Shown: positions 17,301-18,063 of the stretch, one piece after another
Position numbering within the stretch: position 1 is the first letter of the stretch
Layout of the letters: every line of letters starts with the position of its first letter
NCBI GenBank assembly: GCA_033442325.1
Contig: JAWQFM010000011.1
Span: forward strand, 1,402,593-1,466,592
Direction: 5' to 3'
DNA: 64,000 nucleotides
From: Salpingoeca rosetta
Lineage: Eukaryota; Protista; Choanoflagellata
Made by a program: the position numbers and the translations under genes
Notes under the pieces: model-generated
Seen by the model: only the letters and a program-made list of their open reading frames with translations
The model's database searches: none
What the model was told of the DNA's origin: nothing

Positions 17301-18063
17301 TGTTGTTGTCTGTGCACACCTTGAGGCCGGCGATGGTGCGGATGTACTCGTTGAGTGTCATGTCGGGATCCGGGTTCTGTACCTTCTGCGGCTTGCCGTT
17401 GAGGGTGAAGGTGAGTGTGCTCTTGGTCGGCACGTCCGACTTGAACACAATCTTGGCGTTGCATGTTGGGCAAAAGCCGTGGTACGATGACCCCGGCTGA
17501 AGCTCAACCGCGGGCTTGACCCTAGATCAGTGCAAAACACGCCAGGACAAGGGAAGAAGGGAGCAGCGCGGGCAGTGGGCGATGTGGTGACACGATGTGA
17601 CAACACACATGTGAGTGAGAACGCAACACGATTTCGTTCAGTGTCCGCGTGACATGAGATTGCACTGGATGCGCTGGTGATGTGAGGGGACAACTAACGA
17701 CAACAACCACCAACCACTGCAACACACACAAACACACAAACACACACAAACACACACACACACACACACACACACACACACACACACACCACCACCACCA
17801 CCACCACTACCACCAACAGCAGCGTCATTATCGAACAACAGCAACACAATCCATCATCGGAAAGCAAGGGATCGCCTCTTCAAGCCCCTTCCTCCTCCTG
17901 CTGGCGCTCATCTCCTTCCCCCTCATATTCCTTCACCACCACGAGCACTACCACTAGCAGCACCACCACGAGCAGCACCACCACTACCACTCTTTCCTCC
18001 AAGAACACAAGCGCAGATCATTTGCAGTCATCCTGACCTGGTGTTGCATCGCTCACACTTCAT
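5354..18063 (-). CDS. Aldehyde oxidase-type molybdo-flavoenzyme (xanthine oxidase family; 2x[2Fe-2S], FAD and Moco domains), multi-exon
   Basis: Fe-S motifs [22 protein letters not shown] and [24 protein letters not shown]-domain motifs FGNTSTG and [14 protein letters not shown]. Moco motifs [53 protein letters not shown] and SKASGEPP. Start exon 18038-18063; stop 5354-5356. Confidence 0.93.
8513..8582. repeat. (GGAA)n tetranucleotide microsatellite (intronic)
   Basis: Seen directly. Confidence 0.9.
11148..11274. repeat. (TGAG)n tetranucleotide microsatellite (intronic)
   Basis: Seen directly. Confidence 0.9.
12317..12489. other. Assembly gap (173 N) within an oxidase intron, flanked by (GA)n/(GT)n
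   Basis: Run of N. Confidence 1.

Follow-up and report, generated by a model that had tools for sequence, protein, structure and literature searches.

XDH/AOX-family enzymes have been the subject of intensive study as four-cofactor enzymes carrying Mo, two 2Fe-2S clusters and FAD, and the family produces superoxide and peroxide. An earlier note on the locus described here had stated that the eukaryotic proteins normally begin at the ferredoxin domain, and all the solved structures indeed do so. Classical rubredoxins have about 29 residues between their two cysteine knuckles. In the 43-residue module of ZitP, which serves as a protein-docking signal for PopZ, the residues C5, C8, C28 and C31 chelate zinc at the turns of hairpins with a spacing of x19 between the knuckles, and the authors of that study assigned the module to zinc_ribbon_5 (PMC5182065).

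The gene PTSG_04607 of Salpingoeca rosetta lies on the minus strand of a 64,000-nt stretch of DNA (positions 1402593–1466592 of contig JAWQFM010000011.1), referred to below as the window, and all positions are those of this stretch. Its product resembles bovine XDH (1FO4) and human AOX1 (4UHW) in having seven Pfam domains in the canonical order (Fer2, Fer2_2, FAD_binding_5, CO_deh_flav_C, Ald_Xan_dh_C, MoCoBD_1 and MoCoBD_2), all of which scored above the Pfam gathering scores, with Fer2 at residues 47–102. Pfam runs on single exon pieces found these domains and nothing further. Residues 44–206 superposed on the Fe/S domains of bovine XDH with a TM score of 0.9 (by target) and 52% identity. 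The protein differs from the solved XDH/AOX enzymes in that it carries an extra N-terminal Cys4 module of about 36 residues, for which they have no counterpart. Because residues 3–36 of bovine XDH aligned with residues 33–66 of exon 2, about 32 residues of exon 2 together with exon 1 constitute an N-terminal extension relative to the solved enzymes. The proposal in the earlier note that a CxxC-x19-CxxC module stands ahead of the 2Fe-2S domain was thus borne out, and the module proved to be strongly conserved in orthologues.

The catalytic glutamate of the bovine enzyme, Glu1261, corresponds to E1257 of PTSG_04607 (in the motif GEPP), which was invariant in a five-sequence alignment. Of the purine-pocket pair Glu802 and Arg880, which marks xanthine-specific XDH, PTSG_04607 has kept the arginine as R916 and lost the glutamate, which is replaced by Ile807 (GGKITRS vs GGKETRS in the bovine enzyme). 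Ile was also found at the Glu802 position in most members of the separate holozoan clade to which PTSG_04607 belongs. The top PDB sequence match was the human E803V mutant 2E1Q, which has Val at the position of Ile807 and which is described as AOX-type. Because of the Ile at the bovine Glu802 position, "aldehyde-oxidase-like" rather than xanthine-specific is a reasonable label for PTSG_04607 at the level of sequence. In view of this replacement in what is the sole XDH/AOX-family locus found by a Fer2_2 scan of the 55.4-Mb S. rosetta genome, the organism may be without a canonical xanthine-specific XDH. PTSG_04607 has no SKL-type C-terminal signal.

The first exon and its splice

The public protein of PTSG_04607 (EGD72878.1 = XP_004994700.1 = UniProt F2U7X3; 1312 amino acids; P0001 in our set) was found by phmmer with a conserved 88-residue exon of the window (8145–8408, minus strand), to which it was 100% identical. 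A script mapped XP_004994700.1 onto the window without a mismatch in 35 exons, running from 18063 to 5354, and the exon map showed that all introns are GT-AG and 161–541 nt long. This public entry served as the query wherever the whole protein was searched. The public gene range in GL832964.1 converted to identical window coordinates. Long (GT)n and (GGT)n microsatellites were observed in intron 1 (17725–17835) and in several other introns of the gene, and when all six frames are scanned these repeats produce long open frames that are spurious and full of Cys-Val repeats.

The earlier note had proposed a hidden 26-nt first exon that starts at the ATG at 18063, ends at a GT donor after 18038 and joins in phase to an acceptor at 17521. 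Both the sequence and the public model confirmed this structure to the base. The exon is not hidden, however, since the public model XP_004994700.1/PTSG_04607 already has it as exon 1, and the protein of this model opens M-K-C-E-R-C, exactly the peptide that had been predicted. The start context of exon 1 is ccaccATGa, and the exon encodes the first knuckle (Cys3 at 18057–18055 and Cys6 at 18048–18046) ahead of the donor CAG/GTCAGG, whose GT is at 18037–18036. The acceptor of intron 1 (ctgatctag/G) follows a pyrimidine-rich tract, and 17521, the first base of exon 2, is the third base of an AGG codon, so that the junction 18038/17521 is in phase. Among the 34 introns of the gene, GTCAG donors occur in six and a TAG acceptor in two. 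Exon 2 (17521–17320) encodes Pro12, the second knuckle (Cys26 at 17472–17470 and Cys29 at 17463–17461) and Phe35. Exon 2 must have a coding exon upstream of it, since an in-frame TGA lies just before it (17529–17527) and it contains no ATG ahead of TFTLNG, where the 2Fe-2S domain starts. The features are listed in Table 1.

Table 1. Features of PTSG_04607 and its 5′ region in window positions.
Feature	Position	Strand	Description and basis
Whole CDS of the XDH/AOX-family gene PTSG_04607	5354..18063	-	35 exons, 1312 codons; exact exon map
Exon 1	18038..18063	-	26 nt; M K C E R C N T, then AG of codon 9; identical to public exon 1
Intron 1	17522..18037	-	516 nt, GT..AG, phase 2; separates the two putative zinc knuckles
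Exon 2, 5′ part	17440..17521	-	Residues 9–36, remainder of the predicted ribbon; conservation and predicted β-hairpins
Exon 2, remainder	17320..17439	-	8-residue linker and start of the 2Fe-2S ferredoxin domain (TLTFTLNG...); bovine XDH alignment, Pfam Fer2
Intergenic region	18064..18175	.	112 bp between divergent ATGs; TATAAT-like element near 18145; sequence and neighbouring gene call

A divergent gene on the plus strand, encoding a Rad51/RecA-like protein of 347 amino acids, begins its CDS at 18176, and the region between the two genes is presumably a shared compact bidirectional promoter. No upstream ATG on the minus strand was found within this region. Because the divergent CDS begins only 112 bp from the PTSG_04607 ATG, a different first exon would find no unoccupied DNA upstream.

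Upstream of the acceptor at 17521, 144 first exons of the form ATG..GT are geometrically possible, of which some 55 lie no more than about 1.1 kb away. Candidates upstream of 18176 lie inside the divergent Rad51-like gene, and those within intron 1 have poor donors. One candidate inside intron 1, which also holds a CxxC (CPRC; ATG 17610, exon to 17549), was rejected because it would leave an intron of 27 nt and would place Pro at an offset of +8, which breaks the register of the family. The annotated exon 1 gives the commonest family register, with 19 residues between the knuckles and Pro at the sixth position past the second Cys. The splice product agrees with the relatives in both spacing and Pro offset, an agreement that exceeds chance and would not arise from a wrong splice. 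A search with residues 1–240 of PTSG_04607 returned no S. rosetta database fragment that covers the exon 1/exon 2 junction.

Carriers of the module and the shared intron

A set of 123 close relatives was assembled from representatives of clusters at 50% identity and from the hits to a profile built on five full-length members. The pattern CxxC-x(17–20)-CxxC was present in 26 of them, 51–54 (about 52) residues before the first Fe/S cysteine, and more copies, with longer linkers or on fragments, were found beyond these. The earlier note had suggested looking for CxxC..CxxC at the N-termini of other choanoflagellate and holozoan enzymes. In a 27-sequence alignment of the module, which included six other choanoflagellates, Chromosphaera, corals, a brachiopod and many molluscs, the four Cys (C3, C6, C26 and C29) were the sole invariant columns, and Pro12 and Phe35 were at least 90% conserved. 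The knuckle spacing was 19 in 22 of 29 sequences (range, 17–20), and 26 of the 29 had Pro six residues after the second Cys, where the S. rosetta splice product also has Pro.

The choanoflagellate carriers were Salpingoeca urceolata, Hartaetosiga balthica, Choanoeca perplexa, C. flexa, Codosiga hollandica and Didymoeca costata. Because all six are complete ORFs from de novo transcriptomes, the contiguous architecture is present in the mRNA of sister species. The module was further found in the ichthyosporean Chromosphaera perkinsii, in a fragment from Pigoraptor chileana (found after the alignment was made), in the corals Pocillopora and Porites, in the brachiopod Lingula and in 11 genera of molluscs (Aplysia, Mya, Physella, Bradybaena, Haliotis, Liolophura, Mizuhopecten, Biomphalaria, Lymnaea, Bulinus and Batillaria). 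In a FastTree phylogeny of 126 relatives, built with the N-terminal columns removed, carriers fell in choanoflagellate, ichthyosporean, scleractinian and lophotrochozoan clades. The module was absent from sponge, amphioxus, arthropod and tardigrade members of the tree, some of these absences being due to truncated or mis-modelled N-termini. Since many clade members are without it, the module appears to be dispensable for catalysis. A count of gains and losses on the tree (10 changes) was dropped because several of the rows scored as absent were truncated or mis-modelled (P0166, P0172, P0173, P0197 and P0072).

The closest relative of PTSG_04607 was the protein of Barroeca monosierra (P0166; EukProt EP01147), which is 73% identical in the tree alignment and 70% identical by BLASTP. 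Its genome-derived model keeps the second knuckle and has an unrelated N-terminus of about 60 residues; the gene predictor probably missed a tiny first exon. Other interaction domains were found in place of the module. The N-terminus of a relative from Protostelium nocturnum (P0023) has, at the corresponding position, a WW domain (Pfam E = 1.4e-9), which is a protein-interaction module, and a JGI relative (P0240) has a WW-like N-terminus there. Another JGI relative, a 406-amino-acid fragment (P0286), combines a PB1 domain (PF00564) with Fe/S domains.

A phase-2 intron two codons after the first CxxC was present in S. rosetta, Monosiga brevicollis, Porites lobata and Physella acuta. Exon 1 of Porites lobata (68 nt) ends two codons and two bases past the first CxxC, and exon 1 of Physella acuta (62 nt) ends at the same point. 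Furthermore, exons 2–6 are 202, 105, 62, 99 and 78 nt long in S. rosetta and 206, 104, 62, 99 and 77 nt long in Porites lobata (window 17320–16008 vs L004:2418–8124), near-equal lengths that point to deep conservation of intron positions. That a coral and a snail share a phase-2 intron at the identical position with two choanoflagellates indicates, as far as sequence comparison can tell, that the fusion and its split coding are older than the divergence of choanoflagellates and animals.

In Monosiga brevicollis the first exon is truly unannotated, unlike that of S. rosetta. The upstream DNA contains a 50-nt first exon (L003:5750–5799, from CH991549.1) that starts with the ATG at 5750, ends in C-P-R-C-Q-Q plus AG and is followed by the donor AAG/GTGAGA and a 98-nt intron. 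The second knuckle, carried by the exon 2 that follows (5898–6000), is in frame with the annotated start, as judged from a script translation of the joined N-terminus made for this frame check. The public model MONBRDRAFT_3012 is partial and starts at ITFKING, and the locus is split into two calls of 156 and 699 amino acids. Because the first exon is so small, gene predictors often lose the N-terminus with the module, and the Monosiga and Barroeca models both appear to be affected.

Fold and class of the module

The structure prediction that the earlier note had called for gave two β-hairpins for the module. AlphaFold2 was run on residues 1–206 with the 27-row alignment and returned a mean pLDDT of 82 and a pTM of 0.71; over successive residue blocks of residues 1–40 the pLDDT was 89, 77, 90 and 78. 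Hairpins were predicted at residues 21–25 and 32–36, both in this construct and in the module alone, for which the same strands were obtained with a mean pLDDT of 77.6. In the predicted structure the CxxC knuckles lie where the β-hairpins turn, which is a feature of Cys4 zinc ribbons.

None of the Pfam matches to the module in the 27 members exceeded the gathering score of its family, and those of the S. rosetta copy were marginal only. The family matched by most members was Zn_ribbon_4 (9 of 27 at E ≤ 0.01; best E, 6.6e-6), with the printed scores below its cut-off of 30.3 bits, and other zinc-ribbon families came next. The S. rosetta module itself matched neither Zn_ribbon_4 nor Zn_ribbon_5. 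When the ribbon alignment was used as a profile against the PDB, nothing significant was returned, the best hit being a LysW-type knuckle at E = 0.005. The ESM Atlas feature search returned generic small zinc-ribbon clusters only, at 0.76, which is below the trust level.

Foldseek found no counterpart for the first 40 or so residues, and residues from about 44 to 206 matched the Fe/S domains of bovine XO. In a Foldseek-independent structural scan of 48,161 chains, the best neighbours of the 41-residue model were ZitP (2NB9; Z 3.3 over 40 of 41 residues), LysW (3.1) and NrdR (3.0). The top neighbours were all Cys4 zinc ribbons, with Z scores that are weak for the size of the model. The module resembles that of ZitP in that both are N-terminal, comprise about 40 residues and have CxxC-x19-CxxC at the turns of two β-hairpins. 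ZitP differs in being a bacterial (Caulobacter), membrane-anchored protein with an unrelated context, and the likeness may reflect a generic zinc-ribbon design alone. The Pfam families zinc_ribbon_5 and zinc_ribbon_4, to which ZitP-type modules belong, are of the type known as MJ0042.

The module shares with rubredoxins four Cys in two knuckles, a small β structure and an association with redox proteins. It differs from them in having 19 residues between the knuckles instead of about 29, and the aromatic core of rubredoxins is not evident in it. The rubredoxin family PF00301 was absent among the matches listed for the module (25 of 41 families). Because its neighbours in sequence and structure are zinc ribbons, PF00301 is not among the listed matches and the spacing is short for a classical rubredoxin, the evidence leans towards a zinc ribbon as the better-supported class, at the level of the class rather than of a specific curated family. 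On these comparisons and the predicted model, a zinc-ribbon fold with a bound metal is probable.

Possible roles of the module

Our preferred reading of the whole, to which we assign a probability of about 0.6, combines the gene structure, an ancient Cys4 zinc ribbon and a structural docking role. In this reading S. rosetta has one XDH/AOX-family gene, whose coding sequence truly begins with the 26-nt exon, and with exon 2 this exon completes a module of about 36 residues that has two CxxC knuckles 19 residues apart and is connected to the N-terminal 2Fe-2S domain through a short linker. The module is an old feature, conserved within a single holozoan clade of XDH-like enzymes. Its four Cys would bind a single Zn2+, like those of Cys4 zinc ribbons, and it would offer a structural docking surface, either for binding a partner or a localisation determinant or for packing on the Fe/S-FAD side, and would not act as a fifth redox centre. 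The WW domain or WW-like sequence found at the same N-terminal position in the Protostelium and JGI relatives lends indirect support to the docking role. For this part of the reading, interaction rather than redox chemistry, our preference is a slight one.

The reality of exon 1 and of the Cys4 module is a separate matter, and both are almost certainly genuine. Tiny first exons are easily mis-called, and the partial Monosiga model and the unrelated N-terminus of the Barroeca model illustrate this; exon 1 could accordingly be an annotation guess that S. rosetta does not use, with transcripts starting elsewhere and a protein that is without the first knuckle. Against this, exon 2 has no start codon, a divergent gene only 112 bp away fills the DNA upstream, and the other candidate exons suffer from poor donors or from introns that could not be spliced. 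An unused exon 1 would also leave as coincidences the exact family register produced by the splice, the intron position common to four genomes and the contiguity of both knuckles in six choanoflagellate transcriptomes. We consider an unused exon 1 highly improbable.

The earlier note had suggested an extra Zn-ribbon or rubredoxin-like metal site that acts in interaction, redox sensing or electron transfer. Given a genuine Cys4 module, the metal it would hold and the use made of it bear on two other proposals. The module could be a rubredoxin-like Fe(Cys)4 site, a fifth redox cofactor placed beside Fe/S II through which electrons enter from or leave to an external partner. The four invariant Cys in two knuckles, the CxxCG form of the second knuckle in molluscs, the linker, short and conserved in length, between the module and the N-terminal 2Fe-2S domain and weak matches to PknG_rubred (3 of 27 members) and zf-ChsH2 (2 members) are in keeping with this proposal, but the spacing of 17–20 residues is well below that of classical rubredoxins, PF00301 is absent among the matches listed, and the best neighbours in both sequence and structure are zinc-binding ribbons. 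Moreover, many lineages have lost the module while their enzymes retain every other cofactor domain, and a rubredoxin-like site is unlikely. A zinc-thiolate sensor of redox state or oxidants, in which oxidation would release Zn and alter the activity or the oligomeric state in the manner of Hsp33, would suit a Cys4 site on an enzyme family generally known to generate superoxide and peroxide; this proposal is purely speculative, and in the Pfam and structural comparisons the module did not resemble any known family of redox-switch zinc centres. We regard it as very unlikely. A broader idea covers either chemistry: the conserved N-terminal Cys4 site of an ancient holozoan aldehyde-oxidase-like enzyme would serve as a working fifth centre that holds a metal, whether as an iron relay of the rubredoxin type or as a switch built on zinc-thiolate. 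It would couple the Fe/S II-FAD end of the electron chain to a partner or to the redox state and would have been lost in vertebrate and insect XDH/AOX, an idea that seems unlikely to us. If it were true, it would represent a mode of control or electron exit that is not known to have been studied.

The earlier note had not recognised the architecture among described enzymes. This part of it stands, in that a literature search of incomplete coverage found no published description of the ribbon-XDH/AOX architecture or of PTSG_04607, but the architecture is not peculiar to S. rosetta, as dozens of public sequences from Holozoa carry the module. It appears to be genuine, ancient and widespread, to be visible in public sequences, and to be undescribed and without a curated domain model.

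The extra conserved Cys4 module, a predicted metal site on one old holozoan branch of XDH/AOX, is an addition to the architecture of this family. The branch spans choanoflagellates, filastereans, ichthyosporeans, corals, brachiopods and molluscs, and the module can serve as a marker for tracing this holozoan branch of XDH-like enzymes. S. rosetta is genetically tractable, and the role of the module is testable in vivo in this organism.
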